A DNA stretch of 64,000 nt, taken from positions 62,001-126,000 of the IMG/VR virus record IMGVR_UViG_3300025030_000041; one strand, given 5' to 3'. A model generated the notes under the pieces. That model was given only the letters and a program-made list of their open reading frames with translations. It ran no database searches and was not told the origin of the DNA. Positions 4,571-48,688 of this stretch are shown piece after piece. Numbering within the stretch: the stretch's first letter is position 1; every line of letters starts with the position of its first letter. Both the position numbers and the translations under genes were made by a program.

Positions 4571-4714
4571 AATTAGTTGAAGATTATGACCGTTTATCGT
4601 TTAGTATATTAATTATCAATTAATTATATTTAATTGATATATTTAGTTCAAAAATAAAGTACCTAAAAAATTTAATATATCAAAAATATTTCTTATTTTT
4701 GTATTAAATATAAC
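4571..4714 (+). repeat. promoter cassette copy 1
   Basis: ttatcaattaattatattt...tttagttcaaaaataaagtac...ttcttATTTTTGtattaaatataac; matches the other copies. Confidence 0.85.
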
Positions 4715-4776
4715 ATGGGCATAAAAGAAATGCCGAAATTAGAAGTACAAATTATCAATTTAAAACAAAAGTAAAT

Positions 4777-5043
4777 ATGAAAAACAAAACATCAATTTTA
4801 GTAGGAGCTCGGCATTTCTTTTATGCCTTATTAGTAGCTGTTATTTTTTGCGGTTGTGGAAACGGTGAAAATTCAGTGAATGGAGAAATAGAATATAGAA
4901 CAATTGTTGTAGATAGCTGTGAGTATATTGTAAAGTATAATGGCTATCAAAGAGGGTATATGTTTTCTCACAAGGGAAATTGTAAATACTGCTACAAACG
5001 TACCCCCATTTTGGTTAGTTGCGTGAAAATATTACAAAATTAA
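4777..5043 (+). CDS. putative lipoprotein (cassette)
   Basis: Hydrophobic stretch followed by FCGC lipobox-like motif; starts inside a hairpin loop. Confidence 0.6.
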   Translation: MKNKTSILVGARHFFYALLVAVIFCGCGNGENSVNGEIEYRTIVVDSCEYIVKYNGYQRGYMFSHKGNCKYCYKRTPILVSCVKILQN

Positions 5044-5192
5044 ATTGAAACATGGATGATAAATTGGATTAAAAACTTATTTAAAAGCAGGGGAAAAACA
5101 ATTAACTAAACATGTTGTTATACACAGTATTTTGTTGGTGGGATTTGACAAATTAAAAATAAATTAGCATATTTACAAAAAAAATAAAAATT

Positions 5193-5504
5193 ATGAAAGA
5201 ATTATTTGAAAAACAATTAAACGGAACACAACCATTAACAAAAGATGTTTTAGAAAAATTACAAGTTAAAACATATTTTAATGGTGAAGAAAAACAAATT
5301 GGTGAAGTTGTATTAATGGCGATGTTAATGGGTGAAGTAATTGAAAAGGAAGGTGAATATCCAAAAGTACCATTAAAATTAATAACATTAAACGAAAGCC
5401 ATTTTAATTTATTTGAATATGATGAAAGATTTAATAGAGGTAATAAATTACCAACAATTAAATTGAAACCTTTAGTTGTGGTGGGTAAAAAATATTGCGT
5501 ATAA
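5193..5504 (+). CDS. hypothetical cassette protein
   Basis: ORF ending in TAA of TAAC. Confidence 0.65.
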   Translation: MKELFEKQLNGTQPLTKDVLEKLQVKTYFNGEEKQIGEVVLMAMLMGEVIEKEGEYPKVPLKLITLNESHFNLFEYDERFNRGNKLPTIKLKPLVVVGKKYCV

Positions 5505-5564
5505 CGTCCACAGGTATATATAGTTGCGTAAATAACATATAAAATTAATTAAAAGCGATAAAGT

Positions 5565-5798
5565 ATGAAAACAGATAAAAGTAAATTAGAAGAACAAAAG
5601 CAGCAATTGGATATACATGTTGTTAGCGGTAGTTTAACTCATATTCCTTTGTTTCAATATAATGTTGCTGTTGAATCACACGGGAATACATTAGAACTAT
5701 TGCGAATTATACAAAACGATAAAAAGGAATTAAAAGAAGAGTTAGAAGCAACATATAAAGAAATTGATAGGTTAAAGGCTAAACTAAATTACTGCTAA
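5565..5798 (+). CDS. hypothetical cassette protein, coiled coil
   Basis: QLDIHVVSGS is the translated recombination-site arm. Confidence 0.7.
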   Translation: MKTDKSKLEEQKQQLDIHVVSGSLTHIPLFQYNVAVESHGNTLELLRIIQNDKKELKEELEATYKEIDRLKAKLNYC

Positions 5799-5801
5799 TG
5801 G

Positions 5802-6065
5802 ATGAGTATAAATTTAGTAAAAATAATACAAATGAAGAATAAAGATAAACTTTGGAATTTTGTTTATGAACAAGAACCAAGACTAATGGGAGAACCATTT
5901 GGTAGATTTAACGTTAAAGTAGAAAAAGATTTTTTTATTATAGAATGTGAATTACTTACAAACTTGGAAAATCCATTTATAAATACAGAATTGAAAAAGT
6001 GTAAGGTTGATCAAAAATCTTTTACTAATTGGAAGAACAAACAAAATTCTATTATTTTTTATTGA
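5802..6065 (+). CDS. hypothetical protein encoded inside a hairpin unit
   Basis: ORF lies between and overlaps arms agtataaatttagtaaaa / ttttattgaatttatact; start may be the later Met. Confidence 0.65.
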   Translation: MSINLVKIIQMKNKDKLWNFVYEQEPRLMGEPFGRFNVKVEKDFFIIECELLTNLENPFINTELKKCKVDQKSFTNWKNKQNSIIFY

Positions 6066-6281
6066 ATTTATACTTTGTTATGTTTAACGAAGTATAGTTG
6101 TGAGAAGCGAACAATTAAACATAACGGTTGGGTGTATATGTAATGTGAGATTTGAAACACTAAACTTGAATTAACCACAAATGATGATTAGAAGTAGGAT
6201 TGTTGAATATACCACTGAACCTCACATTACATATACACCTTGTTATGTGTAGTACGGTGTTAAACTTAAATTTTAAAACTT

Positions 6282-6578
6282 ATGGATACAATAAAAATTA
6301 AATTAGAAAGTGGAAATGAATATAAATTACCAGACATTTCATCAGAAAAGTTTGATGAATATGTTTGGAAAAGTGGTAGTAATGACGTTGAATATGAGAA
6401 ATATAAACGTGAAAACGGAATGATGGAATTAACTGACTTTAATTCTCAAACGACTAGTGAAATCACATTAGTGGTAGAACAATCTTGGAGAGGTAGAGTT
6501 TTAAAATTTAAGTGTGTTTATGATTTTGATAACGATGAAAACTTTGATGAAAAGGAATATTTCGGAGAACATGAGTAG
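6282..6578 (+). CDS. hypothetical acidic cassette protein
   Basis: ORF inside GTTATGTGTAGTAC...GTATTACACATAA body. Confidence 0.7.
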   Translation: MDTIKIKLESGNEYKLPDISSEKFDEYVWKSGSNDVEYEKYKRENGMMELTDFNSQTTSEITLVVEQSWRGRVLKFKCVYDFDNDENFDEKEYFGEHE

Positions 6579-6587
6579 TATTACACA

Positions 6588-6697
6588 TAAATATTATATA
6601 TATATATATACATGTATGTTTAAACTATAATAAAATCAATAGTATGAACGAAAAAATTATAAAGATTTGTAAACAAAAACTTATATATTTAACGTAA
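6588..6697 (+). pseudogene. attI-like terminal site plus putative truncated integrase start (MNEKIIKICKQKLIYLT)
   Basis: Near-identical inverted copy at 46900-47002; same layout as the site upstream of the intact integrase. Confidence 0.55.
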
Positions 6698-6752
6698 TGT
6701 AAAAAACTATTTTGATACATTAAAAATAATTAGTTATAATAGAGTCTAGTAT

Positions 6753-13131: not shown

Positions 13132-13169
13132 AACTATTCAGTTTAGCCTCACCCATATATAATACACAA

Positions 13170-13301
13170 AGAGTATTATATTTATCATTTAGTAGATTGA
13201 TTATCAATTAATTATATTTACTTGTTATATTTAGTTCAAAAATAAAGTACTAAAAATGTTAATATATCAAAAACATTTCTTATTTTTGTATTAAATATAA
13301 C
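13170..13301 (+). repeat. promoter cassette copy 2
   Basis: agtagattgattatcaattaattatatttacttGTTAtatttagttcaaaaataa...ttatttttgtattaaataTAAC. Confidence 0.9.
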
Positions 13302-13344
13302 AGTTTGCAGGTTTATTTAGTTGCGACTTTAAAAACGAAAAATT

Positions 13345-13515
13345 ATGATAACAGAAAAACAATACTTAAAAGCGAAAAAGTTAATTGCAGACTACGAAAG
13401 CCAGCAATTGAATAAACATGTTGTTATAAGCAGTAAGCCGACCTCAAAAAAGAAGAAGGTGATTATAGATGCAGATAAATTTTCAAAGATGTGTGATGTT
13501 ATTAAACGGATATAG
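13345..13515 (+). CDS. hypothetical cassette peptide, 56 aa (not in ORF track)
   Basis: MITEKQYLKAKKLIADYESQQLNKHVVISS... Confidence 0.65.
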   Translation: MITEKQYLKAKKLIADYESQQLNKHVVISSKPTSKKKKVIIDADKFSKMCDVIKRI

Positions 13516-13587
13516 GCTTATTGCTGCTAACGTTCATCAGATATATTCAGTTCTGATTTTAATATATAACTAAAATAAATTAATAAG

Positions 13588-13845
13588 ATGAAAGATAGAA
13601 AACATATAAAAACATTTGAAGATAAGACATCAGAATTGAATATATCTGATGTTATAAGTAGTAAAACTAAGGAAGAAATTCTAAAATTGATAAAAAGTTT
13701 AGATGATAGAGGGTATTTTTATATTTTCAATAATAGAGAGGATTTTGTAGAGGGTAGAACAGATTGGGATGATTTAAAAGATACTTGTGAAAACTTTTAT
13801 TATGTTATTGAAAATATAAAAGAATTAATAGAAAGAAATGAGTAG
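13588..13845 (+). CDS. hypothetical cassette protein with KHIKTFED leader
   Basis: ELNISDVISS is the translated site. Confidence 0.7.
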   Translation: MKDRKHIKTFEDKTSELNISDVISSKTKEEILKLIKSLDDRGYFYIFNNREDFVEGRTDWDDLKDTCENFYYVIENIKELIERNE

Positions 13846-13925
13846 TTTTATTACTTATAACGTGCCGCAGCTTGACGCTGTTGGCGATTTGAAACACGAA
13901 TTTTAATTAAACAACAAAAGTAAAT

Positions 13926-14270
13926 ATGGAAACGAAAACTTCAATTAACAACGAAACCGCCAATAGCGTTCAAGGTACTGTTAGGCGTAGGGCGGACATC
14001 AATCAGGAGATTGCCGAAAAATGGGAATTAATCGCTCAAATCAAAACAGAAATAGTTGCCTTGAAAAAAGAGGAACTTCTATTGTGTGATGACCACCAAA
14101 GATTTGAGGAAACGGAAGAAGAAATAACAATTTCAAGGCGACCAAAGAAAACCGAAAAGCGATTAATTGGGCGTATTCATTGGAAGGAAGAATTTAAGGA
14201 TGAAGATACAGAGCAATCTATTTGGATTGAGCGTTCACAGGTTGTTCGCGTCAATGGTGTGTGGCAGTAG
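13926..14270 (+). CDS. hypothetical cassette protein
   Basis: ORF; more GC-rich than the backbone. Confidence 0.75.
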   Translation: METKTSINNETANSVQGTVRRRADINQEIAEKWELIAQIKTEIVALKKEELLLCDDHQRFEETEEEITISRRPKKTEKRLIGRIHWKEEFKDEDTEQSIWIERSQVVRVNGVWQ

Positions 14271-14382
14271 CCTTACGCCTAACGTTTTGCGTATATGTGA
14301 AGTACGCATAGCAGAAACTTGAAATTAAATACAAACCTTAATGGCGTATTTCACATATACGCTGTTAGCAAATCGTAAAATT

Positions 14383-14559
14383 ATGACTAAGAAAGATATT
14401 TTAAAATTAGTAGAAGAAACATTCAGCGAAGAAATTTCAACTTCTTGTGCTGAAACTGTATTAGGACTTGAAAGTTGGATTGATGGTAAAGAAGAATTTA
14501 TGGAAAAGTTAGCAGAGAAGTTGAAATTGTTATTTGATGATAACGACTTATCTAAATAA
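14383..14559 (+). CDS. hypothetical cassette protein
   Basis: Start at 14383 or 14341. Confidence 0.6.
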   Translation: MTKKDILKLVEETFSEEISTSCAETVLGLESWIDGKEEFMEKLAEKLKLLFDDNDLSK

Positions 14560-14571
14560 TTTTATGTTTGC

Positions 14572-14731
14572 TAACGTTCTGTAAATATGATTAGTTGAAG
14601 AGTACTGTCATTTATAATTTAGTAGATTGATTATCAATTAATTATATTTACTTATTATATTTAGTTCAAAAATAAAGTACTAAACGTGTTAATATATCAA
14701 AAATATTTCTTATTTTTGTATTAAATATAAC
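14572..14731 (+). repeat. complete promoter-only cassette (copy 3)
   Basis: TAAC-gttct-GTAAATATGATTAGTTGA...TCAATTAATTATATTTAC-tt-ATTA-body-TAAC; no ORF. Confidence 0.9.
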
Positions 14732-14757
14732 GGCTACAGATAAACTCAGTTTTTATT

Positions 14758-14979
14758 ATGGAAAAGAAAATATATTACGAAAACAATTGGTTAAATCAGC
14801 ACTTAAATAAAGTTGGATTGCTCGATAAAAAATTGAGTTTATCTGATGTTATGTGTTGTGTTTGTGGGTCGGAACTCACAATTCAAGAGAATGAAGAAAA
14901 TCTAACTTATGATGTTAGAGAACGAATATGTGATAAATGTAATAGTGAGTTGAGCGAGGAAAGAAAACATTGCATATAA
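14758..14979 (+). CDS. hypothetical zinc-ribbon cassette protein
   Basis: CCVC...CDKC; stop is part of TAAC. Confidence 0.7.
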   Translation: MEKKIYYENNWLNQHLNKVGLLDKKLSLSDVMCCVCGSELTIQENEENLTYDVRERICDKCNSELSEERKHCI

Positions 14980-14997
14980 CGGCATCCGCTATGAGTA

Positions 14998-15291
14998 GTG
15001 GCGGATTTAGAACTACTCACTTTAAATTTAGCACAAATGACAATAGAAAGCACAGAACATCAAGAAAGCACTAACCCGCCATTACTTATATCGAGTGTTA
15101 GCGGTAGTGTTTTTCGTCCGAAGAATGGACACGAATTACTGCAAGCATTGAAAGAAAATAAACAATGTGAGATAGTAGATACACACGCATTTTTAGCAAC
15201 AAAAGCACTTGAAGACAACCATTGCGGATTTTCATTTTCTTTCAAGCTGTCAAAGTGGAATAAAGGATGGTCAGGTTTCGAGTGGTCTTAA
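14998..15291 (+). CDS. hypothetical cassette protein (integrase-proximal)
   Basis: LLISSVSGS translated site; start may be ATG 15037. Confidence 0.65.
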   Translation: MADLELLTLNLAQMTIESTEHQESTNPPLLISSVSGSVFRPKNGHELLQALKENKQCEIVDTHAFLATKALEDNHCGFSFSFKLSKWNKGWSGFEWS

Positions 15292-15300
15292 CATTACCGC

Positions 15301-15320
15301 TAACTATTATATATATACAA
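15301..15320 (+). other. attI-like terminal recombination site (TAAC-TAT-(TA)5)
   Basis: Last TAAC has no partner hairpin and lies 37 bp before the integrase ATG. Confidence 0.6.
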
Positions 15321-15340
15321 GTACGCTTAATATATTGAAT

Positions 15341-16156
15341 ATGAATACTAAATTTGATTGTATTATCAGAAAATTTGAAAAAACTCTGATAATAAAAAAT
15401 TATTCAACATGTACTATTAATAATTATAAAAGTTGTCTTTATAACTTTTTAATAGAAATAAACAATGATCCATACCATTTAAATTTAGAACAGTTAAACA
15501 ACTATTTATTTAATTTTAATTATTCGTCAGTATCACAGCAAAATCAAATACTTAATTCTTTAAAAATATTCTATTTATTAATTTTAAAAAAATCAATAAA
15601 ACATTTAATTAAAATTAAAAGACCACGAAGAGAAAAGAAATTACCACAAGTAATTTCGCATGATGAAATTGTGCAATCAATTTCCAAAATACAAAACTTA
15701 AAACATAAAGCTATCATATCGCTAGCATATAGTAGTGGATTAAGAGTTTCAGAAATATGTAATCTTAAATTAGAAGACATAGATTCAAAAAGAATGCTAA
15801 TTTTAGTTAAATCAGGAAAAGGAAGAAAAGATAGAGTTGTACCTCTTTCAAATCATATTTTAGGGCTTTTAAGAAAATACTATCTTAAATACAAACCTGA
15901 GTTTTATCTTTTTGAAAGCTATGCTCATGGAGTTAAATATTCTACTTCAAGTTGTAGGCAAATTTGGAATAATTTTAAAATTAATAAAAATTCAACTTTT
16001 CATACATTGAGGCATTCATGCTTTACAAATCTTTTAGAAAATGGAACGGACATACGAATAATTCAAAAAATAGCAGGGCATTCATCAATAAAAACTACAG
16101 AAATTTATACTCACATATCAACTAATATCTTAAATAAGATTAAATTACCAATTTAA
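15341..16156 (+). CDS. tyrosine recombinase / integrase (271 aa)
   Basis: SGLRVSE (R), GKGRKDR (K), HTLRH, GHSSIKTTEIY; N-terminal SAM-like domain; the track start 15209 overlaps a cassette, so 15341 is preferred. Confidence 0.95.
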   Translation: MNTKFDCIIRKFEKTLIIKNYSTCTINNYKSCLYNFLIEINNDPYHLNLEQLNNYLFNFNYSSVSQQNQILNSLKIFYLLILKKSIKHLIKIKRPRREKKLPQVISHDEIVQSISKIQNLKHKAIISLAYSSGLRVSEICNLKLEDIDSKRMLILVKSGKGRKDRVVPLSNHILGLLRKYYLKYKPEFYLFESYAHGVKYSTSSCRQIWNNFKINKNSTFHTLRHSCFTNLLENGTDIRIIQKIAGHSSIKTTEIYTHISTNILNKIKLPI

Positions 16157-19861: not shown

Positions 19862-21613
19862 CTATCTTTTCCAAACAAAAATATAGTTACCACTATTATA
19901 ACATTCTTTATAATCCAATCCATGCATTATCTCAAACTCCGTTTTATCAATACTATAATTACTTAATTTATGCTTAACGTAAACTTGTCTATTATACCTC
20001 TTATAATTTTTAGTATAAAAATACCCAGGTCTAGACTCTCCTAAATAATCAAACCCCATATTAATATAAACATTTTCGTCAAATCTAAACGCCCAATCTC
20101 TATTAGAATACGTTAAAACCAAATTAATTTCACTATACTTATTAATAAAATAAGAAAATAACCTATTAGCTGCCCCAATAACATTAGTATTCAACTTATT
20201 ACAAAACCTATACAACTCTAAATCATATTTTTCCTTGTTTTTATTCCCATACCTAATCTTTCCAAATGTCATCAAACTAACTAACTCCTCTCCATAATAC
20301 AAACCTATATTATATTTACTCATACACTTGCCCTGCAAATGATTATCTTCTAAAAATTTATTAGACTCTTTAAACGATACTTCTCGTATCACACACTTCC
20401 TAGAATATATCCTATTAGGAGTTTTATTTAAAAGGTTAAGTATACGTGATTTAATAATATTTTTTCTATATAACCAATCATCTTCCCATATATGAACTAG
20501 ATGGACCTTTTGTTTTATACAATTAACGGTTTTATTTAAATGATAATTTTTATTTTTTAGTATTACATTATTATGTGCATAAAAACTATTATATTCAAAT
20601 GCTAAGTTTAATTCAGGTATATAAATATCTAATTCCTTTGGTGAAATAACAGTTCTATTATTTTGAATAACATTAAAGTCAGTATTATTTTTAATAAATT
20701 CATAAATTTCAGTTTGACAAATACTTGAGCTTAATGGATTACAATTTAAGCATGGAGTTTCTATTTTATATTTTTCTACTCTTTGCTGTAAAAGATTATT
20801 ATTAATAATATATTCAGTATTACATTTATCACATAGTATAGTTATATCTCTATCATAATCTACATTAATAATATTTAAGTTTGGATATTGCGCTAGTATT
20901 CGTTTTCTAGTTTTTTCTAGTTTTTTCTTTTTAATTTCTTCTCTATTTATCTTAAGAGATTCTATTCCAGCTAATCTAACTTCAGGAACTTGAAATGGAT
21001 GAAAATATTTTCCATTAGTTTTTTCTATAAATGTCTTTCTCTTTTTTTCTTTTAGTTTAATACTACTATCAGTTCCTTTTCCATAATTTTTTGAAAAAGT
21101 ATTTGATGCTTTTTCTTTAACCCAACTAATTTGTTTAATATTGTCTACACCATACTTATCTCTAATTGTATCTTTTCTTTTTAAATACGCAGTATTTCCT
21201 TTCGCTAATGGGTTATCCTCTCCTTTTAAATGCTTATGATTTCCAGAAATATGATTCTTAATATACTTTTCTTTCTTTTTAAGTTTAACGTCTAAATCAT
21301 TATTAATACATTTCATACTACAATATACTGAATATCCTAATGACAACCCTCTAAATTTAGGGAAATTAATCTTACAACACTTACATATAGGTACACAGTT
21401 CAATTCATAAATATAATGATAAATCTGTTGTGTAAATGATAGATCTATCAAATCATTTAATTTACTATTCTCTTCTATTAAATTAAATAAATCAGGATTA
21501 TTATTATTTAACTTTTTTCTGACACACTTCCACCCTGATTTATTATCAGTCATAAAATATTCTAATACTTCAGTTTTCATTTTTCCATTCAAATTTATAA
21601 TTTCCACAATCAT
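19862..21613 (-). CDS. putative homing endonuclease (Hef/Vsr-like PD-(D/E)XK) paralog 1
   Basis: KYGVDN repeats, ELDIYIPELNLAFEYN, HIWEDDW, C-terminal NHLQG...ELYRFC domain. Confidence 0.7.
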   Translation of the reverse strand: MIVEIINLNGKMKTEVLEYFMTDNKSGWKCVRKKLNNNNPDLFNLIEENSKLNDLIDLSFTQQIYHYIYELNCVPICKCCKINFPKFRGLSLGYSVYCSMKCINNDLDVKLKKKEKYIKNHISGNHKHLKGEDNPLAKGNTAYLKRKDTIRDKYGVDNIKQISWVKEKASNTFSKNYGKGTDSSIKLKEKKRKTFIEKTNGKYFHPFQVPEVRLAGIESLKINREEIKKKKLEKTRKRILAQYPNLNIINVDYDRDITILCDKCNTEYIINNNLLQQRVEKYKIETPCLNCNPLSSSICQTEIYEFIKNNTDFNVIQNNRTVISPKELDIYIPELNLAFEYNSFYAHNNVILKNKNYHLNKTVNCIKQKVHLVHIWEDDWLYRKNIIKSRILNLLNKTPNRIYSRKCVIREVSFKESNKFLEDNHLQGKCMSKYNIGLYYGEELVSLMTFGKIRYGNKNKEKYDLELYRFCNKLNTNVIGAANRLFSYFINKYSEINLVLTYSNRDWAFRFDENVYINMGFDYLGESRPGYFYTKNYKRYNRQVYVKHKLSNYSIDKTEFEIMHGLDYKECYNSGNYIFVWKR

Positions 21614-23324
21614 ACACTCTATAAATATTCCGGCTTAGCATTATCTCATGCCCTGTCATATTCTTATCGTATCCTTCTCTTACTAATACATCCTTCCTAA
21701 AATTAAACCTATGCCTCCTTACTCCATCTATAACATACCAATAATTAGGTCCACTTGTACTAGCATACCTAAATCCTAACTTAATATATAAATTATCATC
21801 CTTATAATTTGTCCAACCCTGGTCGGCATAACTTATAATTTTATATGGATTATATGTTTCTATAAAATATTTAAATAGTTTAGAGGCCGCTCCTACTACA
21901 CTAGTATTTAACTTATTGCAAAACCTCAATAACTCATACTCGTCAATCTTATTTTTACTGCCTAATGACTTCCTCAATTTACCAAATGTCATCAAACTTA
22001 CTAACTCCTCCCTGTTATACAAACCTATATTGTATTTACTTACGCACTTTCCCTGCAAATGATTATCTTCTAAAAACTGATTAGACTCTTTAAACGACAC
22101 TTCTCTAACCCCGCACTTCCTAGAATATATCCGATTAGGAGTCTTATTTAAAAGGTTAAGAATTCGTGATTTAATAATATCTTGCTTAAATACCCAGTTA
22201 TCCTCAAATATGTGAATTAAGGTTATACCAGTTTTATTACACTCAAACGTTTTATTTAAATGATAATTATTGCCTTTAAATAACTCATTATGCCAATATA
22301 CTCCATTAAATTCAAATGCTAATTTATAATCAGGTAAATATGCATCTAATTCATTATATTTAAAATTTTTTAAAACTTTTTTATTCTCATATACATATTC
22401 ATTAGACTTAACATTATCTTTTATAAAATTTAATAACTCTTTTTCAGCAATAGAACATTTTTTAAAAATAGGAGGATTACCCTTGCGACATGGGGAAGTT
22501 TTAAATTTAATACATCTATTAAATGGTCCAACTAAAATATCAAAAATTGAATTACAACTATTACAACTTACAGTATAGGATTTCATATTATACTCTATGA
22601 TGATATTAATATTTAAAAAATCGTTAGATATTTTCTTTTTTATATTTAAAGCGTTTAAACTTTTAGTTTTACCACTCCTTTTACCTATATCTTTAAATTG
22701 TGATACATTTTTTACATTATATTTTTTTAAATTAGTTTGTTTAGTTTTTTCTTTAATAATACTACTAGCTAATCCTACTCCATTATATAATCTCATGTGC
22801 GTATCAAGAGCTTTCTGTTTTATTTCATTAGACTGTAAAGGAGATTCTACACCATATAAATTGAGCGTCGTATTCTTATATGTTTCTCTTACTTTAGGAT
22901 TAGACCAATTATGATAATACCCAGTTTTTTCAAAACACTTCTGCTTAAATTTATTTTTAGCATCATTATTTTTTAAAAAATGGTCTTCACCATATTTTTT
23001 TTTACACGTATTTTTAAAAGAATCATTCTTAGATTTTATCTTACATTCTTTATTTCCACATGTTTTATGATAATACCCTGTAAATAATAATGGATTATTA
23101 CAATAATTGCACCTTTTAATTTCTTTTATATCATATATTAAACTATGTATTCTTTGAGTTATTGAAGCGCTTATTAAATCTAAATAGGAAGTCTCAATAA
23201 CTATAATTTTATTAAAACTCTCACGATTCTTTGCTAAAAGAACTAATGAACTATACCTTATATTAGATGACTCCTTTATATGTTTAATTTCATTAAACAA
23301 AAATTCTCTATTGTATACTTTCAT
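21570..23324 (-). CDS. putative homing endonuclease (Hef/Vsr-like PD-(D/E)XK) paralog 2
   Basis: KKYG repeats, ELDAYLPDYKLAFEFNGVYWH, same C-terminal domain. Confidence 0.7.
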   Translation of the reverse strand: MKVYNREFLFNEIKHIKESSNIRYSSLVLLAKNRESFNKIIVIETSYLDLISASITQRIHSLIYDIKEIKRCNYCNNPLLFTGYYHKTCGNKECKIKSKNDSFKNTCKKKYGEDHFLKNNDAKNKFKQKCFEKTGYYHNWSNPKVRETYKNTTLNLYGVESPLQSNEIKQKALDTHMRLYNGVGLASSIIKEKTKQTNLKKYNVKNVSQFKDIGKRSGKTKSLNALNIKKKISNDFLNINIIIEYNMKSYTVSCNSCNSIFDILVGPFNRCIKFKTSPCRKGNPPIFKKCSIAEKELLNFIKDNVKSNEYVYENKKVLKNFKYNELDAYLPDYKLAFEFNGVYWHNELFKGNNYHLNKTFECNKTGITLIHIFEDNWVFKQDIIKSRILNLLNKTPNRIYSRKCGVREVSFKESNQFLEDNHLQGKCVSKYNIGLYNREELVSLMTFGKLRKSLGSKNKIDEYELLRFCNKLNTSVVGAASKLFKYFIETYNPYKIISYADQGWTNYKDDNLYIKLGFRYASTSGPNYWYVIDGVRRHRFNFRKDVLVREGYDKNMTGHEIMLSRNIYRVYDCGNYKFEWKNEN

Positions 23325-27199: not shown

Positions 27200-27721
27200 T
27201 TAAACATAAACTTTTCCTTTTACATCAATTACTTTTCTTACTTCTCTTACTGTAAATTTTTTAGTATTATTCTCAATATTAAAGTATTCTCCTACCGCTG
27301 TAGGAGCTCCTTCAAGACTAGTTAAATAATTATCAGAACAATCAAAATCACCACCTACTATTTTTGGACTTCCTTCTAAACTAGTTAAATTATTATTATA
27401 ATAACAACAACCAAAAAAACCAGTTACTTCTTCTAGGTTTAGCTCTTTCAAATTATTTATTTCTTTTAGTCTAACATTACCAATTATAACTTTAATATTC
27501 TTAAAGTCTTGTATATTATTTTTAGTTATAATAATCGTTTTATCGAAGGGTTTAGCTACGAATATTTGTTCTTTGGTATAACCTTTATTGAGGTAAGGAA
27601 GTAATAAATCATCCCACCGTTCTTTAAGTCGTCTAGGTATAAATATATCTTTAGCACTAAGCTTAGACTTATTAGATTCTTCTTCAGATATAAATTGTTC
27701 AAATAGCTTTATATGCTTCAT
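27200..27721 (-). CDS. LRR-like (LTSLEG) paralog with MKHIKLFEQF leader
   Basis: 22-aa repeats; paralog family. Confidence 0.85.
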   Translation of the reverse strand: MKHIKLFEQFISEEESNKSKLSAKDIFIPRRLKERWDDLLLPYLNKGYTKEQIFVAKPFDKTIIITKNNIQDFKNIKVIIGNVRLKEINNLKELNLEEVTGFFGCCYYNNNLTSLEGSPKIVGGDFDCSDNYLTSLEGAPTAVGEYFNIENNTKKFTVREVRKVIDVKGKVYV

Positions 27722-27724
27722 TAT

Positions 27725-28348
27725 TTAAAATAGCATTTTATAAGTTTCTACAAAATTTATAGTAGAGCTAAATGATGGTTTGATTTTTTGAATTATATTA
27801 GAGTCTGGTTCTAAATCTTTGCCATTAATTCTAAAAGAAGTAGTAGTAGGTTTAGCGTTACTGATTATAGTAATATCTTCTTTTAGATCAGCTTCAAATA
27901 TAAAATCGTCATAATTATACTCAGTAACTATTTTAAGACGTAATTCTAAAGTTGGTAATACTCTTAATATATCACCAATTAATTCCATTTTTGAATATTT
28001 TTCCTTTGGTATGCCTAAGTCATCAAAAAATTCAGTTTCTTCAGTTTTTATTATAAAGTCAAGAGGAATTAACATTAAGTCATTATAATTAATAGTAGGT
28101 TCATTAATTGATAATAAACCTATTTTTGCTCCTTTTATTTCTTTATTAACTCCAGATTTTATATCAAATGTAGAATAATAATATTTCTCTTCAATATGAT
28201 TAATTTTACCTCCTAAAACCTTAAGCTTTTTAATACACGCCGTAGTAGTTGAAAAATTTATTTTAATATCTTCTTCAGAATGCTGCTTAATTTCATTAAT
28301 CTTATAATTATTCTTTATTTTATATTCACAGAAATTATCAAATATCAT
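27725..28348 (-). CDS. hypothetical protein
   Basis: ORF. Confidence 0.7.
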   Translation of the reverse strand: MIFDNFCEYKIKNNYKINEIKQHSEEDIKINFSTTTACIKKLKVLGGKINHIEEKYYYSTFDIKSGVNKEIKGAKIGLLSINEPTINYNDLMLIPLDFIIKTEETEFFDDLGIPKEKYSKMELIGDILRVLPTLELRLKIVTEYNYDDFIFEADLKEDITIISNAKPTTTSFRINGKDLEPDSNIIQKIKPSFSSTINFVETYKMLF

Positions 28349-28365
28349 TTTCGTGTATTTTATTT

Positions 28366-29001
28366 TTAAACATAAACTTTTCCCTTTACATCAACTACTT
28401 TTCTTACTTCTTCTTCTATAAATTTTTTAGTATTATTCTCAATATTAAAATATTCTCCTACCGTGGTAGGAGCTCCTTCAAGACTAGTTAAATTATTATT
28501 AGAACAACTAAAATAGCCGTTTACCGTGGTAGGAGCTCCTTCAAGACTAGTTAACTTATTATTATAACAATAAAAATTTCCACTTACTATAGTAGGAGCC
28601 CCTTTAAGACTAGTTAACTTATTATAAGAACAATCAAAAAATCCACTTACTATAGTAGGAGCCCCTTTAAGACTAGTTAACTTATTATAAGAACAATCAA
28701 AATATCCAACTACTTCTTCTATACCTAATACTCTCAAATCATTTATTCCACTTATTCCAACATTACCTATTATTACTTTAATATTCTTAAAATCTTCTAT
28801 ATTATCTATAGTTATAATAATCGTTTTATCAATTGGTTTAGCAATAAATATTTGTTCTTTGGTATAGCCTTTATTTAGGTAAGGAAGTAACAGGTCATCC
28901 CAACGTTCTTTAAGTCTTCTAGGTATAAATATATCTTTAGTGCTAAGCTTAGGAGTTTCTTCTTCAGATATAAATTGTTCAAACAGTTTTATATGTTTCA
29001 T
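28366..29001 (-). CDS. LRR-like paralog with 4 repeats
   Basis: 66-nt near-identical tandem repeats at about 28450-28710. Confidence 0.85.
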   Translation of the reverse strand: MKHIKLFEQFISEEETPKLSTKDIFIPRRLKERWDDLLLPYLNKGYTKEQIFIAKPIDKTIIITIDNIEDFKNIKVIIGNVGISGINDLRVLGIEEVVGYFDCSYNKLTSLKGAPTIVSGFFDCSYNKLTSLKGAPTIVSGNFYCYNNKLTSLEGAPTTVNGYFSCSNNNLTSLEGAPTTVGEYFNIENNTKKFIEEEVRKVVDVKGKVYV

Positions 29002-29363
29002 TATTCTTCAGTTTTAGGTTCAATTTCAGTAGAAGTTTCTTCTGGTTTAATGTCTTCGCTAGGGGTTTCTAATAATTTTTTTTCTAGGTATTCTTTTTGA
29101 GTTTCATAGAATTGTTTAATAGTCGGCCAAGTTAGTGTTACTTCTTTATATAATTCTTCCATTTTTGGTCTAATACTTTTAATATCTGAATTATCATTTA
29201 ATAATACATCTAGTAGAACTGTACGAAATTTAGTTAAACCATTATATGCAGTATCAAAATCTTTTTCATCTAATGTTAGAGATTCTGGATCTTTTTTAAT
29301 ATCAGTAGCCTCATTAAGAATTCCATTTTTAAATTCTTCGTAAAGTTTAAATTTTTTATTCAT
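29001..29363 (-). CDS. hypothetical protein (KLYEEF leader)
   Basis: ORF. Confidence 0.7.
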   Translation of the reverse strand: MNKKFKLYEEFKNGILNEATDIKKDPESLTLDEKDFDTAYNGLTKFRTVLLDVLLNDNSDIKSIRPKMEELYKEVTLTWPTIKQFYETQKEYLEKKLLETPSEDIKPEETSTEIEPKTEE

Positions 29364-29392
29364 GATAAAGTATTTTATTTTTATTTATTTAT

Positions 29393-29944
29393 TTAATCTA
29401 TTGCAACTTTTAAATTAAAATCAAAATAATTAAATGTTGCATCAAATGTATTAAAAGTTGGAGTATTACTGCTATATGATAATTTTAGGCTTGACATTCC
29501 TTTTAATATAACTTTATTATATTCAATTTGGCTAATCGCTTTACCTTCACTATTTAACATTAATACTATAAATGGTGGAAAAACATCAAGCTCAGTATTA
29601 TTAAAATCTAAATAATTTAATGCATTTTCAAGCATAATGAAATAATTTAAAAAAGCGTCCGTTAATTTAAAAGTTAATGTAAATTCTCTAGTAAATAAGT
29701 CTTGAATAGGTTTACTATTTTTCATTTCACGAGTCTTTCCTAATAGTAAAGTTTGAGAAGATGTTGTCATTGACCATCCTGGAAAATCAATTTGTTGTAC
29801 TGTACTTGACATAAAATCAGATATTGTATCATAAGGTAATATTAAACTCTTATAATAATCTTTATATTTATTTTCAATTTCAGAATTAAAAAATTCTTTT
29901 GGAAATTGAAATACAAAACTACTTTGTCTATTATTTAATATCAT
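29393..29944 (-). CDS. putative tail tube-like / virion protein
   Basis: QQIDFPGWS...FTLTFKL...LSYSS...FDATFNY pattern; structural context. Confidence 0.5.
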   Translation of the reverse strand: MILNNRQSSFVFQFPKEFFNSEIENKYKDYYKSLILPYDTISDFMSSTVQQIDFPGWSMTTSSQTLLLGKTREMKNSKPIQDLFTREFTLTFKLTDAFLNYFIMLENALNYLDFNNTELDVFPPFIVLMLNSEGKAISQIEYNKVILKGMSSLKLSYSSNTPTFNTFDATFNYFDFNLKVAID

Positions 29945-29947
29945 TTA

Positions 29948-30484
29948 TTAAAATGTTAAAATTGAAACTATATTATTTTTAATAGTTTGTGTTAAATACG
30001 ATTTATCAATAGACGAAATTGAATCTAATAATGGCTGTTTATATCCGTCTTTATATAATTCAATATACGATTTTACAGTATTTAATAAGTCGAATGCATT
30101 AGATTGTCCAACTGTATTTAATACATATATTTTTGCCTCATCAATAACATTCTCTCTACGAATAATACCTTCATTTATAGATTCTTGAGGAGAATAATAT
30201 TTTATATTAGTTTTAGTATATCCAATATTTCCATTTTCTAAATACCAATCTGAAACTAAAGTTCTATATAAAACTAATCCTAATGAATTTCTAGTATAAA
30301 TTCTAGTTTCTCTAACTATTAAATCTGAATAATCAATCCCATTATAATATTTATAATATTCAATGATAGATAATTCCCCTTTTATAATAGTCCGTTTTTT
30401 ATGAAACCCCATAATATCATAATCGAATAACTCCGGCGAATCATACTTACTATGTATTTTAAATTTAGAACTAATTACAGTCAT
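29948..30484 (-). CDS. hypothetical protein
   Basis: ORF. Confidence 0.7.
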   Translation of the reverse strand: MTVISSKFKIHSKYDSPELFDYDIMGFHKKRTIIKGELSIIEYYKYYNGIDYSDLIVRETRIYTRNSLGLVLYRTLVSDWYLENGNIGYTKTNIKYYSPQESINEGIIRRENVIDEAKIYVLNTVGQSNAFDLLNTVKSYIELYKDGYKQPLLDSISSIDKSYLTQTIKNNIVSILTF

Positions 30485-30500
30485 TTACTTATATATTTTT

Positions 30501-31010
30501 TTAAATAATAACTTCATCTTTTACATCAACTATTTCTCTAACTTCTTCTTCTGTAAATTCTTTGTCATTACCACTAATCCAAAAATCATTTTTAACTATC
30601 ATAGGTGCTCCATTTAAATTAGTTAAATAATTATCAGAACAATCAAAATCACCACCTACTATTTTTGGGCTTCCTTCTAAACTAGTTAGCTTATTTAAAT
30701 AACATTTGAAATTTCCGAATACTTCTTCTATATTTAGCTCTCTTAAATCACTTATTCCTTTTATTCTAACATTACCTATTATAACTTTAATACTTTTAAA
30801 GTCTCCTATATTATCTTTAGTTATAAGCATATCTTTATTAAAAGGTTTAGCAATGAATATTTGTTCTTTAGTATAGCCTTTATTGAGGTAAGGAAGTAAT
30901 AAGTCATCCCACCTTTCTTTTAGTCTTCTAGGTATAAATATATCTTTAGCTCTAATTTTAGGTTTATCTTCCTCAGATATAAACTGTTCAAATAGTTTAA
31001 TAGGTTGCAT
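30501..31010 (-). CDS. LRR-like paralog
   Basis: MQPIKLFEQF...DIFIPRRLKERWDD; LTSLEG repeats. Confidence 0.85.
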   Translation of the reverse strand: MQPIKLFEQFISEEDKPKIRAKDIFIPRRLKERWDDLLLPYLNKGYTKEQIFIAKPFNKDMLITKDNIGDFKSIKVIIGNVRIKGISDLRELNIEEVFGNFKCYLNKLTSLEGSPKIVGGDFDCSDNYLTNLNGAPMIVKNDFWISGNDKEFTEEEVREIVDVKDEVII

Positions 31011-31011
31011 T

Positions 31012-32691
31012 TTATAAGTTTTTAGGTCTTGATATTATTTGTTTTATTTGTATATTTACAGAAGATAGATTATTGTCCGAAATTCCAGTATCAAATTCTA
31101 TATTATTTCTTGTAGAGAATCCTCCTCTAATTAGAGGTAATTCATTTTCTTCTATAATAATATCATTAAATTCGTCTAAACCTATATCAGTTATTGTACT
31201 TAATGTTAGATCTTTATTAATATATTGTAATTCATTCTTTTCACTTATAATATTTATATTAACACTATCTACATCATTAATATTTTCTATTAATTTAATT
31301 AGGTCAGACCGTGGAATCCGGTCTCTTCTCTTGCTATTAATAAAGTATTCTGCAATTTCCTTTAATATTTCATTTTTAATTTGCGGAGGCCCTCCTAATG
31401 CGTCATCATAAATAATAACTGATACATTTATTACATATCTGCTAACTATAGGATCAAGTATTTTAATATCACTTCCAATTAGTTTTGTACCAGATTTTTC
31501 TATATACTCTAATAATTTAGATTTTTGAAATTTGTTTAATGAAAAGCGTTCAACTGGGGTAGAGTAATAATCTTCACTTTTAGAAAATGTTTTTGTAATA
31601 TTGGGTATTACAAAAAGATTAATTAATCTATCATTTTCAGGATCTAAAAATACTCTTATAATAGAAAAGAAATTCATTTTTCTAAGTAATATTTCATAGT
31701 TATCTGCATTTACTAGAGCGAAATTTTTGCTAGCTTTAGGAGCAATTAACCTAGTTAATGCTATAGGTTCAGGGTTAGCCCCAAACGTAGGAGGAGTTTT
31801 AACATTAATTGAAAAAACTTCATTTAAGTCTATTTCATTTCCAAATTGGTCAAATCCAGTATCTATAAATGTAAAAAATAGTCCCTTTGGATTTTGGGTT
31901 ATATCAATATTTCCAGATCCACCCTCATTAACTAAATACTCAACCCTAATATCACTTCCTAGTGTAGGGATAGCCCCAAAATTTCCATTACCAAAAAATA
32001 GGTCTATTCCACTAGTCATACCTGTTTTAATTATATAAGTATTTGCATTTCTAGGCATATCATAAAAACTGTCATACTTATCCCATTTTTCGCCATTTAT
32101 ATAAACGTCTACATTAAATTGATCTACAAAAAAGTTCTTTGAATATTGGACAGCATAACTCTGTAATTGCTGTCCAGTTCCAGTAAATATTTGGGTTTCT
32201 ATAAATCCCTGCTTTATAGTCATACTTTTACCATTATCTAGACCTGTTGTAGATACTTTTATTTCGTCAGTTGGAAATTCAAGTATATATGTTAAATTAT
32301 TGTTTTGGCATTGCAATTTAGTATATTTAGGTATAATAACTATATTATTAGCAACTTGAGTTATAAAATCAGATTTAATATATAATGATATTTCGCCGCT
32401 CGCTGAAATAGACCTAGTAGGTGAATGCCCCGCTAAACTAGCTAATGAATAGATACTAGTTTCTCTAGACGCCTGAAAAATGTTTAATTCAGTAATACTA
32501 TCAGATATATAATATAAAGCCAGCTGCATTAAATTTTCTGATACAAATATAATTTGACCAAATGGAGAAGCCACTGTGAAAATATTGCGTGACTGATTAA
32601 ATTTATCTACTAAATAATCAACTGTGTCACGTAATAATTCAAATGTCTTTAACCGATGTAATCTAAATATCTTAAGTTCTGTAGTAGCCAT
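31012..32691 (-). CDS. baseplate wedge subunit (T4 gp6-like)
   Basis: SIYSLASLAGH, LFFGNGNFGAIP, VEYLVNEG, GANPE, LVNADNYE. Confidence 0.8.
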   Translation of the reverse strand: MATTELKIFRLHRLKTFELLRDTVDYLVDKFNQSRNIFTVASPFGQIIFVSENLMQLALYYISDSITELNIFQASRETSIYSLASLAGHSPTRSISASGEISLYIKSDFITQVANNIVIIPKYTKLQCQNNNLTYILEFPTDEIKVSTTGLDNGKSMTIKQGFIETQIFTGTGQQLQSYAVQYSKNFFVDQFNVDVYINGEKWDKYDSFYDMPRNANTYIIKTGMTSGIDLFFGNGNFGAIPTLGSDIRVEYLVNEGGSGNIDITQNPKGLFFTFIDTGFDQFGNEIDLNEVFSINVKTPPTFGANPEPIALTRLIAPKASKNFALVNADNYEILLRKMNFFSIIRVFLDPENDRLINLFVIPNITKTFSKSEDYYSTPVERFSLNKFQKSKLLEYIEKSGTKLIGSDIKILDPIVSRYVINVSVIIYDDALGGPPQIKNEILKEIAEYFINSKRRDRIPRSDLIKLIENINDVDSVNINIISEKNELQYINKDLTLSTITDIGLDEFNDIIIEENELPLIRGGFSTRNNIEFDTGISDNNLSSVNIQIKQIISRPKNL

Positions 32692-32706
32692 TAATATTAT
32701 TTATTT

Positions 32707-33285
32707 TCAAACTGTAACTTCACCTTTTACATCAATCACTTCTCTTACTTTTTCTGTAAATTTCCTTGTATTATTATTAATATAAAAATTTCCATTAACT
32801 ATTTTAGGAGCTCCTTTAAGATTAGTTAGTTTATTATTATAACAATGAAAACTACCATTCACTATAGTAGGGCCTTCTTCTAGACTAGTTAGTTCATTAT
32901 TAGAACAAAAGAAATTACCATTCACTATAGCAGGACCTCCTTTAAGACTAGTTAGTCTATTATAAGAACACTTAAAATATCCATTTACTTCTTCTATACC
33001 TAACTCCCTCAAATCAGTTATTCCAATTATTCTAATTATTCTAACATTACCAATTATAACTTTAATATTCTTAAAATCTTCCATATTATCTTTAGTTATA
33101 AGTAGCTCACTATCAATTGGTTTAACTATAAATATTTGGTCTTTGGTATACCCTTTATTAAGGTAATGGATAAGTAAGTCATCCCATCTTTCTTTAAGCC
33201 TCCTAGGTATAAATATATCTTTAGCACTAAGTTTAGGAGTTTCTTCCTCAAATATAAATTCTTCAAATAATTTAATATGCTTCAT
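32707..33285 (-). CDS. LRR-like paralog
   Basis: MKHIKLFEEF; 3 repeats. Confidence 0.85.
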   Translation of the reverse strand: MKHIKLFEEFIFEEETPKLSAKDIFIPRRLKERWDDLLIHYLNKGYTKDQIFIVKPIDSELLITKDNMEDFKNIKVIIGNVRIIRIIGITDLRELGIEEVNGYFKCSYNRLTSLKGGPAIVNGNFFCSNNELTSLEEGPTIVNGSFHCYNNKLTNLKGAPKIVNGNFYINNNTRKFTEKVREVIDVKGEVTV

Positions 33286-33311
33286 TATTTTTATTTATTT
33301 TTATTTAAAAT

Positions 33312-33338
33312 AAAAAAGGCTGATGTAAATCAGCCTTT
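33312..33338 (-). terminator. intrinsic terminator
   Basis: aaaggctgat/atcagccttt hairpin with A run on + strand. Confidence 0.7.
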
Positions 33339-33361
33339 ATATAAACAAAAATAGTTTTTTG

Positions 33362-33961
33362 TTAAACGTAAACTTCTCCTTTTACATCAATCACTTCTCT
33401 TACTTCTTCTTCTGTAAATTGCTTTGCATTATTATCAATATAAAAGTTTCCTTTAACTATTTTAGGAGCTCCTTCGAGGCTAGTTAATTCATTATAAGAA
33501 CAATTAAAATATCCATTTATTTTAGTAGGACACCCCTTTAGACTAGTTAAATTATTTGAAAAACAATAGTAACCTCCAGTAACAACTGGACCATTTTCTA
33601 AACTAGTTAATCTATTATTAGAACAATCAAACTCTCCATTAACACGTTTTATATGACCATCAAAACTACTTATATTATTAGTATTACAAGAATAACCTCC
33701 TGTTATTTTTGGACTACCCTTTAAACTTGTTAAGTTATTATCAAAACAACTAAAAGTACCAATTATGCGTTCAATACCTAATTCTTCTAAATTAGATATA
33801 CCCTGTACTGCAACATGGGCAGTTATAACATCTGTATTTTTATACTTATTAATATTTTTTTTAGTAATAACGATATGTTCTTTTGTATCTGGTCTATACG
33901 AACTTGGATAACTTATAGAGTCATTAACAAAGTCTTCAAATAATTTTACATATTTTTCCAT
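33362..33961 (-). CDS. divergent LRR-like paralog
   Basis: MEKYVKLFEDF; about 5 repeats; same C-cap. Confidence 0.85.
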   Translation of the reverse strand: MEKYVKLFEDFVNDSISYPSSYRPDTKEHIVITKKNINKYKNTDVITAHVAVQGISNLEELGIERIIGTFSCFDNNLTSLKGSPKITGGYSCNTNNISSFDGHIKRVNGEFDCSNNRLTSLENGPVVTGGYYCFSNNLTSLKGCPTKINGYFNCSYNELTSLEGAPKIVKGNFYIDNNAKQFTEEEVREVIDVKGEVYV

Positions 33962-34016: not shown

Positions 34017-34060
<44 letters not shown>

Positions 34061-46866: not shown

Positions 46867-47258
46867 GTTTTTTTTAATTTGTGGGATTTCTCTAAGACAC
46901 TATATAAGTTTTTGTTTACAAATCTTTATAATTTTTTCATTCATAGTATTGATTTTATTATAGTTTAAACATATATATATATATATATATATATAATAGT
47001 TATAAAACATTAAAACGATTTTATAACAACAAATATATGTTATTTAAGTATTTCATCTGTTGAATATCCTGTTAATAATAAGCTTTTTATTTCCAACCCA
47101 ATCATTCGTAAAAAAATTAAAAATGCTCTCATATTAGGCTTTCCTTGTTTTACAGTCTTCCAGTAATTGTTAAAAATGTATTTCAATGTAATAAACATAT
47201 TTTTAATTTTTTAGTTAAACACAAAGTTTATACCAAACTGTTAGGTGCATTTTTGTTT

Positions 47259-47741
47259 TCAATTTTTTTTGCCAACGCTCTTAAAAAGTTCGTTATACTT
47301 TGAAACCGTTACTTCTTCACAATCCTTTGGTATTTTAACATTCCATTTTTCATCAACGATAAAGCCGAAATATTCCTTATTGTTTTGAGCAAATCCAATC
47401 GTTTTAAATGGCGCACCATCAAATCCTATACATTGGTTTAATTCATCAATAGTAACTCTCATCGTAGCATCTAATTTGGCTTGTATTTCCTTCCCTGCTT
47501 TTGTATTCATTCTTGGTAGCCACTCGTTACCATTTACTTTTTTGAATACTTTCTCATCGGGTTTATCCTTAAATATTAAGGATGAAAAACCCCCCCACAC
47601 AAGCCAATAGCCACCTCGCCATTGATCAAAACCGATTTCTTTTGCAATGGCTTTATCTGCTTTTAATACTGCATCCGCTTTTTCGGATATTACTTGGAAT
47701 TTATTCCCTGTTTCTGATGTTTTTTTTGTTATAAAGTGCAT
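47259..47741 (-). CDS. hypothetical cassette protein
   Basis: ORF, higher GC, ends near site 47240. Confidence 0.75.
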   Translation of the reverse strand: MHFITKKTSETGNKFQVISEKADAVLKADKAIAKEIGFDQWRGGYWLVWGGFSSLIFKDKPDEKVFKKVNGNEWLPRMNTKAGKEIQAKLDATMRVTIDELNQCIGFDGAPFKTIGFAQNNKEYFGFIVDEKWNVKIPKDCEEVTVSKYNELFKSVGKKN

Positions 47742-47845
47742 ATCATTTATTTTAAATTGTTATATAGTCGTGTTCCAATCAAACATTCGTGGTAAATTGA
47801 ACGAGAGAAAAGAAAACAGTTTTGACACCCCGCTTAATGATTTAA

Positions 47846-48364
47846 TTATCCAAATCTAATTCTTCCATTAGGGTATTTAATCCAAAACTTTTTTATTTCT
47901 TCAATGACGGCATCTTTTCCTATTTCAGACAGTGAGTATACCAAAAATATGTCATTATTTCTTTTCTCAAAGAAATCCAATGTTTCTTCTAAAGATAACA
48001 ACTCATCATCTGGATATTTTCCTATTCTAAATATATCATGTATTCCATCAATGCCTTTGTAAAAACTATTATTTTTTTCACAATATTCTAACCTTAAAAC
48101 ATCTTGTGAATGATGTAGAGTAGCCAATTTACAAAGCCGTTTTTCAACTCTGCTATAAATTCTTTTTAATACAGATAAACAATATTTAGAATTTTCTATT
48201 GTTTTGTCATCAAATAAGAATTTCTCATCTTCTAATAATTTATTGTCAATGTGTCTTTCGTAATAACCCATTTTTTTACTTAAATGTATTAAATACTTTT
48301 CTCTTACTTCTTCATAAGAGGGTTGAATTTCTAATTTATTTGAAAACCAAGTATGACATCCCAT
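47846..48364 (-). CDS. hypothetical cassette-region protein
   Basis: ORF MGCHTWF. Confidence 0.75.
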   Translation of the reverse strand: MGCHTWFSNKLEIQPSYEEVREKYLIHLSKKMGYYERHIDNKLLEDEKFLFDDKTIENSKYCLSVLKRIYSRVEKRLCKLATLHHSQDVLRLEYCEKNNSFYKGIDGIHDIFRIGKYPDDELLSLEETLDFFEKRNNDIFLVYSLSEIGKDAVIEEIKKFWIKYPNGRIRFG

Positions 48365-48526
48365 ATTTTTAATCGTTTAATTATTTCCTTTCCTAAAAAT
48401 GTTTTATTTTTTCTTCTGCTCCGAATGAATTGTAGTGGAAGCTCCTGCTGCTAACAAAGGATATAAGAAAGTAATTTTTTCTTGTCTATTTTTAATGGTA
48501 AAAAATTCCATTCTCATATCCTCATC

Positions 48527-48643
48527 GTTATATTTAATACAAAAATAATAAAAAGTTTTGATATATTATAGAGCTTAGTACTTTATTTTTGTATTAAATA
48601 TAACGAGTAAATATAATTAATTGATAATCAATCTACTAAATTA
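48527..48643 (-). repeat. promoter cassette copy 4 (perfect 22-bp terminal IR)
   Basis: gttatatttaatacaaaaataa / ttatttttgtattaaatataac. Confidence 0.9.
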
Positions 48644-48688
48644 TTAAATTTATTGAGTATATAGTTTTAAATAAATAAATAACATAAT

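Follow-up and report, generated by a model that had tools for sequence, protein, structure and literature searches.

Why would two gene-cassette arrays in a phage genome, lying on opposite strands and some 40 kb apart, end in the same (TA)n site followed by an open reading frame of only 14 or 17 codons? We met this arrangement in a 64,000-nt stretch of DNA (hereafter the window) covering bases 62001-126000 of the 246,115-bp, 26% G+C viral record IMGVR_UViG_3300025030_000041. The window encodes a major head protein, head protease, baseplate wedge, DNA polymerase, clamp loader and homing endonucleases, and so belongs to a tailed jumbo phage, independent assemblies of which come from groundwater metagenomes. 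A first-pass annotation, made from the sequence alone, proposed that whole units of promoter, array, attI-like site and integrase had been copied or acquired repeatedly and had then lost the integrase, that the short reading frames (stubs) derive from a second integrase allele, and that the TA tract could slip. We set out to determine whether the repeat is real, what the stub is, and what kind of system the arrays belong to.

A repeated element carrying the start of an integrase gene

A repeat search recovered the element as two inverted arms of 93 nt that are 96% complementary, and direct reading of the sequence agreed, giving TA tracts of 8 and 12 units at the stubs and 5 units at the intact integrase locus (Table 1), as the first-pass annotation had stated. 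Runs of 12 or more alternating TA bases gave 23 overlapping pattern matches, from five tracts, against 0.37 expected. A third copy of the 75-nt core lies outside the window; it has no TA tract and carries a 1-nt deletion that shifts the stub frame. Copy 1 has TAAA where every other site has TAAC, and the bases that precede it, ATTACACATAAA, match the canonical cassette end ATTACACATAAC-TAT seen in another phage locus apart from this C to A change. Both copies in the window are spanned, together with their flanks, by contigs from independent assemblies of the same phage, so they are not assembly artefacts. Two other short-read contigs of this phage break inside the element and both start at TATAAAGATTTG, which is the expected effect of a three-copy repeat and a warning that arrays in such assemblies can be fragmented or mis-joined.

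Table 1. Coordinates of the element, its arrays and other features discussed in the text. Positions are those of the window unless marked as genome positions.
Feature	Position	Strand	Description
Repeat arms	6595-6687 and 46901-46993		93 nt, inverted
Copy 1, crossover core	6588-6594	+	degenerate; TAAA 6588-6591, TAT 6592-6594
Copy 1, TA tract	6595-6610	+	(TA)8, expanded form of the TATATATA part of the attI-like site
Copy 1, leader remnant	6611-6643	+	includes the TAATAAAATCAATA motif
Copy 1, integrase stub	6644-6697	+	ATG 6644, 17 codons, stop 6695-6697; MNEKIIKICKQKLIYLT; homology to integrase genes ends at about 6692 (...TTTAAC, then G)
Promoter-like match after stub 1	6712-6740		TTGATA, 17 nt, TATAAT
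Copy 2, crossover core	47002-46996	-	intact; TAAC 47002-46999, TAT 46998-46996
Copy 2, TA tract	46995-46972	-	(TA)12
Copy 2, leader remnant	46971-46945	-	
Copy 2, integrase stub	46944-46900	-	ATG 46944, 14 codons, stop 46902-46900; MNEKIIKICKQKLI; homology to copies 1 and 3 and to integrase genes ends at 46901 (...CTTATATA)
Short hairpin	46999-47027	-	GTTATAAAAT-CGTTTTAATG-TTTTATAAC; end of the last cassette of array D
Copy 3, 75-nt core	genome 50985-51059		outside the window
Array B	4593-6594	+	promoter-type cassette (4593-4713), then small-ORF cassettes with TAAC junctions
attC-like long hairpin	6119-6248	+	inside array B; ATAAC-GG...CC-TT-GTTAT
Array C	13165-15304	+	two promoter-type cassettes (13165-13300 and 14573-14733) and six ORF cassettes, ending at the intact attI-like site
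Array D	46996-48652	-	promoter-type cassette (48652-48528), then cassettes with TAAC junctions
Intact attI-like site and Int1 leader	15301-15340	+	TAAC 15301-15304, TAT 15305-15307, (TA)5 15308-15317, leader 15318-15340 containing CAAGTACGCTTAA
Int1	15341-16156	+	271-aa Xer-like tyrosine recombinase
Int2	genome 234523-233720		intact integrase
Integrase domains	genome 77653-78120 and 233753-234181		the only ones in the genome
Int1-type stub	genome 161156-161255		window-equivalent 99156-99255, outside the window; 17-18 codons, MNTKFDCIIRQFKKTQITP, then stop
Further promoter-type repeats	57025-56978 and 60388-60269	-	
Third kind of array end	genome 13213	-	outside the window
Third kind of array end	genome 180356	+	outside the window
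56-aa cassette copies	858-960 and 13329-13431		79% identical
Other long TA tracts	34022-34055; genome 186893-186918		(TA)17 and (TA)13
Repeat-built paralogous genes	27200-33961	-	
Adjacent 583-584-aa ORFs	19862-21613 and 21570-23324	-	

We next asked whether the stub derives from an integrase gene. BLASTN of both loci against 50,697 GenBank phage records found nothing, and exact-pattern scans of IMG/VR for the stub returned only contigs of the same phage. Using the intact integrase of the window, Int1, as a query instead returned thousands of recombinases of 265-271 aa, several of which begin almost exactly like the stub, among them the proteins designated P0119 (MNDKIIKICEQKFIYLNYS), P0112 and P0113. 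Among 80 IMG/VR loci, one (L087) encodes a full-length 267-aa tyrosine recombinase whose start matches the stub at 15 of 15 residues and 44 of 48 bases (95.7% over 46 nt by blastn, E 5e-14). The leader and coding DNA of the stub together hit the starts of more than 35 full-length integrase genes, the best being 92% identical over 64 nt with an E-value of 3e-19 (locus L065), and every one of these hits ends at window position 6692; homology stops at codon 16. The leader remnant of copy 1 aligns with the leaders of the P0119 and L065 integrase genes, and that of copy 2 with copy 1 and with intact integrase leaders. Given the A+T-rich genome, with Lys/Ile/Asn-rich coding sequence, and the only loose resemblance to Int1 noted in the first-pass annotation, we considered whether the match was a chance effect and the repeat merely a recent local duplication. 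The consecutive identical residues, the E-values, the matching untranslated leader, and the position of the element behind the same core site exclude this explanation. The stub is therefore the 5′ end of an integrase gene, but of a third lineage rather than a second, because the genome also holds two intact integrases, Int1 and Int2, with other N-termini and leaders. The same phenomenon is independently visible for Int1 itself, as elsewhere in the genome an array ends in TAAC-TAT-(TA)5, the Int1 leader and 17-18 Int1 codons, with homology ending at ...GATAAC and unrelated DNA following.

The boundary between cassettes and integrase

Having identified the stub, we took a closer look at the (TA)n site that precedes it. 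Three contigs (L024, L025 and L026) carry a 100% identical integrase and the same downstream genes, yet have different upstream cassettes that diverge exactly to the left of TAAC-TATTATATAT, and two contigs with the identical P0119 integrase do the same. In 71 of 76 assessable IMG/VR loci the integrase start is preceded, 36-70 nt upstream, by TAAC, 0-5 nt (usually three) and a TA tract of 2-5 units, the one tract of 5 units being this phage's own Int1 site. This is what an attI site looks like in comparative data, although sharp divergence at TAAC could also arise if whole arrays were swapped by homologous recombination with one crossover in the constant side. The tracts of 8-9 and 12 units at the stubs thus lie outside the range seen next to live integrases and are expansions. 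Copy 1 is (TA)8 in the window and (TA)9 in three independent assemblies, and in one 3,069-bp comparison this is the only difference, directly supporting the slippage that had been suggested; the (TA)12 tract of copy 2 has the same length in two independent assemblies. Two more long TA tracts in the genome share their own flanking sequence (CATTGATAC.CAATTAAATAAAATTT), lie between minus-strand genes, and are unrelated to the stub element.

Intergenic spacers within the arrays share a junction, a cassette end of the type ATTRCnnnTAAC followed by G(G/T)Tnnn..ATA..AGT. Over 47 loci with full flanks, the motif TAACG[GT][TC] occurs 4.83 times per 4 kb upstream of the integrase on its strand, 0.51 times downstream and 0.62 times on the other strand, and 38 of 47 loci have three or more upstream. 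One cassette, of 56 aa, sits in arrays C, E and F, being first in array C, last before Int2, and present in a third array, and identity ends exactly at TAAC on both sides; a further copy near the left end of the window implies another array there. L024 and L025 share a cassette at different ranks in their arrays. The repeat of 120-135 nt that the first-pass annotation called a promoter (120-160 nt across the promoter-type elements) occurs at least 16 times in the genome, always ends in ...GTATTAAATATAAC, and is itself bounded by TAAC-GTT...TAAC, so that it behaves as a mobile non-coding cassette. It contains an internal inverted repeat (GTTATATTTAG...TAAATATAAC) and a TAnnTTTG-like box 16 nt before its end. 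Genes after the stubs are tightly packed core genes without junction motifs, so the stub marks the true end of the array. A clamp-loader search for diverged relatives, meant to show the site before array D arrived, returned only the same phage and two remote hits.

These features recall the PeSL promoter/stem-loop cassettes of T4-type phages (PMC2839356, PMC4122927), in which repeated promoter-bearing elements flank small novel ORFs in plastic regions between core genes of large myoviruses and gene content is shuffled in modules. PeSLs are thought to act through homologous recombination and have no dedicated recombinase, and here too repeats of 75-135 nt flank blocks of small novel ORFs set between core genes, raising the possibility that the promoter-type repeat and the stub are simply patches of homology through which whole arrays are exchanged. 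However, individual cassettes rather than whole arrays are shared between arrays, their boundaries fall on a 4-nt core that is too short for homologous exchange, a dedicated recombinase gene sits at the array end in hundreds of phage contigs, junction hairpins covary, and the promoter-type repeat is bounded by TAAC like any other cassette. We therefore regard a purely homology-driven mechanism as unlikely.

Some of the junctions fold. A hairpin family with the invariant loop CGTTTTAATG and TAAC and GTTA boxes around a 12-bp stem sits at cassette junctions in dozens of unrelated phage contigs; 98.3% of cells are paired, 11 of 12 stem pairs show compensatory changes, covariation is 0.689 against 0.192 in shuffles, and pairing collapses to 37-53% when one arm is slid. 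A short form of this hairpin, present in the centroid fold and with the crossover TAAC as its 3′ base, is the very end of array D, and the same hairpin abuts the attI-like site in four other phages. The long hairpin of array B has a fold of -23.1 kcal/mol (z -4.8), with 0 of 200 shuffles as stable. Most junctions, however, are short and show no obvious hairpin, and because the covarying hairpins lie on the transcribed strand and use G-T pairs, indicating that the ORF-sense strand or the RNA is what folds, they could act in RNA rather than in DNA.

Comparison with integrons and Xer systems

Int1 matches Pfam PF00589 (Phage_integrase, 4.7e-38) and PF13495 as well as a PHROG integrase family, but it is not an integron integrase. 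It scores 170.7 bits, in two stretches, against the TIGR02249 cut-off of 265, and in alignment with VchIntIA (2a3v) query residues 179-204 (about 25 aa) stand where the chain has residues 179-250 (about 70 aa), so that roughly 45 residues are missing at the position of the IntI-specific insertion. As this domain is what lets integron integrases read folded attC sites, recombination of folded single strands is not assured. The best structural and profile matches are to XerA (4a8e at 1.9e-36, 5hxy at 1.7e-34, NCBIfam XerA at 2.2e-57), the structures being archaeal, with the same two-domain size. Yet these scores also fall below the family cut-offs, at 194.6 against 220 for XerA, 150.8 against 335 for XerC and 148.3 against 330 for XerD, and whereas Xer systems resolve chromosome dimers at one dif site, here there are many sites, arrays of cassettes and several paralogous recombinases in a phage. 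Bacterial relatives are nearly all from Bacteroidota and at most 54% identical, and the ten isolate and MAG loci inspected (41-46% identical) encode proteins with a different, extended N-terminus, have no TAAC/TA site or array, and belong to another subfamily.

Integrons share with these arrays a tyrosine recombinase gene next to a fixed site where variable cassettes begin, cassettes that are mostly single small ORFs, an AAC/GTT-type core as the only invariant part of the crossover, cassettes recurring at different ranks and in different arrays, and the existence of arrays without an integrase. Some junctions are imperfect palindromes that fold, with structure conserved more than sequence, but many are only about 25-40 nt with conserved primary sequence and no evident stem, and one hairpin family has a conserved loop, which leaves open whether the junctions correspond to attC sites. 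Read on the opposite strand, the layout is that of an integron, with a divergent integrase, attI ending in GTTA, and cassettes ending in R''-L''-loop-L'-R', although this is an argument applied to the observed motifs rather than a test. In contrast to integrons, the cassette ORFs point towards the integrase rather than away from it, promoters are supplied as mobile cassettes at the far end of the arrays or inside them rather than by a Pc promoter in intI or attI, and the host is a virulent-type jumbo phage genome with several platforms. Arrays B and D, having several TAAC junctions and no nearby integrase gene, correspond to CALINs (clusters of cassette sites lacking an integrase) in an analogous sense only, because their sites are not canonical attC sites.

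Integrons and CALINs have been reported in phage genomes, including virulent ones, as 3 complete integrons, one integrase without cassettes (In0) and 17 CALINs in 10,705 genomes (Qi et al. 2023, PMC9892861). Those were found with IntegronFinder and attC models and are canonical attC sites or captured bacterial integrons, and the text does not mention Bacteroidota phages or Xer-like recombinases. In the present family the integrase appears native to the phages and is found at 324 IMG/VR loci, with thousands of related proteins in metagenomes and at least eight array ends in this one genome. Full-text searches of an incomplete literature collection found nothing describing this recombinase family with such arrays, an absence that does not prove novelty. 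Such a device would explain how jumbo phages turn over blocks of small ORFs of unknown function, which are likely candidates for host-takeover and counter-defence genes.

Loss of the integrase and neighbouring features

Taken together, these data make it likely that the element is the integrase-proximal end of a phage-borne, integron-like cassette platform that has lost its integrase, comprising the crossover core with its TA tract, the integrase 5′ leader, and the first 14-16 codons of a Xer-like tyrosine recombinase gene of which no full copy of that lineage remains in this genome. As no recombination event was observed directly, we infer, from comparisons that cannot resolve the exact cleavage position within or next to TAAC, that the recombinase inserts, excises and reshuffles cassettes at that core.

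The proposal that whole units were copied and then lost the integrase is only partly right. The three stub copies end within 5 nt of each other, and the Int1-type stub ends at the homologous codon, just before the conserved (K/L)NYS motif, suggesting one loss followed by spread, or a site-specific truncation, rather than three independent losses. Integrase loss appears to be recurrent and to fall at one position. Four deletions landing in a 12-nt window of an 800-nt gene are unlikely by chance. The gene reads AAC-TAT at the Asn-Tyr codons, a mimic of the attI core (...TTTAAAC-TAT in L087), leading us to infer that the recombinase, acting on this secondary site, cut off its own gene, or that one such event was followed by spread. 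This idea rests on four stub ends, only two of which finish in TAAC, and copy 1 needs a 1-nt difference in an A run to fit. The stubs also reveal which part of the site is under constraint, as the TA tract stays at 2-5 units next to live integrases and, we propose, grew by replication slippage once the integrase was gone. Array B, with its TAAA, and the third copy, with no core, look like fossils, while array D keeps a core identical to that of Int1, with (TA)5 or more, and could still be served in trans. A further reading is possible but more tentative: that these are relics of a distinct, phage-native class of integron built on a compact Xer-like recombinase without the IntI domain, with TAAC/GTTA-bounded cassettes and folded sites, inverted ORFs and mobile promoter cassettes, in which the recombinase recurrently amputates its own gene and leaves arrays that paralogous integrases in the same genome still service in trans.

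Alternatively, the 75-nt element could be kept by selection as a regulatory module, a promoter, leader or small peptide ORF, for the core genes that follow it, namely the clamp loader and the MptE-like gene. It lies directly upstream of core genes in all three copies, is 95-96% conserved, contains a TATAAT hexamer, and shows a synonymous third-position change in codon 2 as one of the few differences between copies. Against this, copy 3 carries a frameshift inside the stub, the peptide tail differs in all three copies, and the hexamer is not conserved in the homologous leaders of intact integrases. Copy 1 is followed by its own 11-of-12 match to a sigma-70-type promoter, outside the repeat and 12 nt before the 216-aa MptE-like/sialyltransferase-like gene. 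The promoter scan as a whole was not enriched (14 sites found against 18.7 expected), and no Bacteroidota-type -7 box was found in the stub. The element has no significant fold (z +0.21), and there is no Rfam family in the window. We consider this explanation improbable.

A third kind of array end occurs at two loci outside the window, where (TA)4-5 is followed by about 85 nt shared between them. This sequence weakly resembles the leader and start of another integrase type (E 0.005), and so may be a further, more decayed stub. At one of the two, genome 180356, the promoter-type repeat runs almost directly into (TA)5, but it differs from the expected junction by two bases and we do not claim it as an empty site. 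Elsewhere in the window, a block of paralogous 170-210-aa genes built from 63-nt (21-aa) repeats is interleaved with baseplate genes and looks like an expanded family of tail-fibre or receptor-binding modules. Finally, two adjacent ORFs that share an 84%-identical 248-nt stretch lie next to the major head protein gene, and the first of these matches PHROG homing-endonuclease and HNH families.
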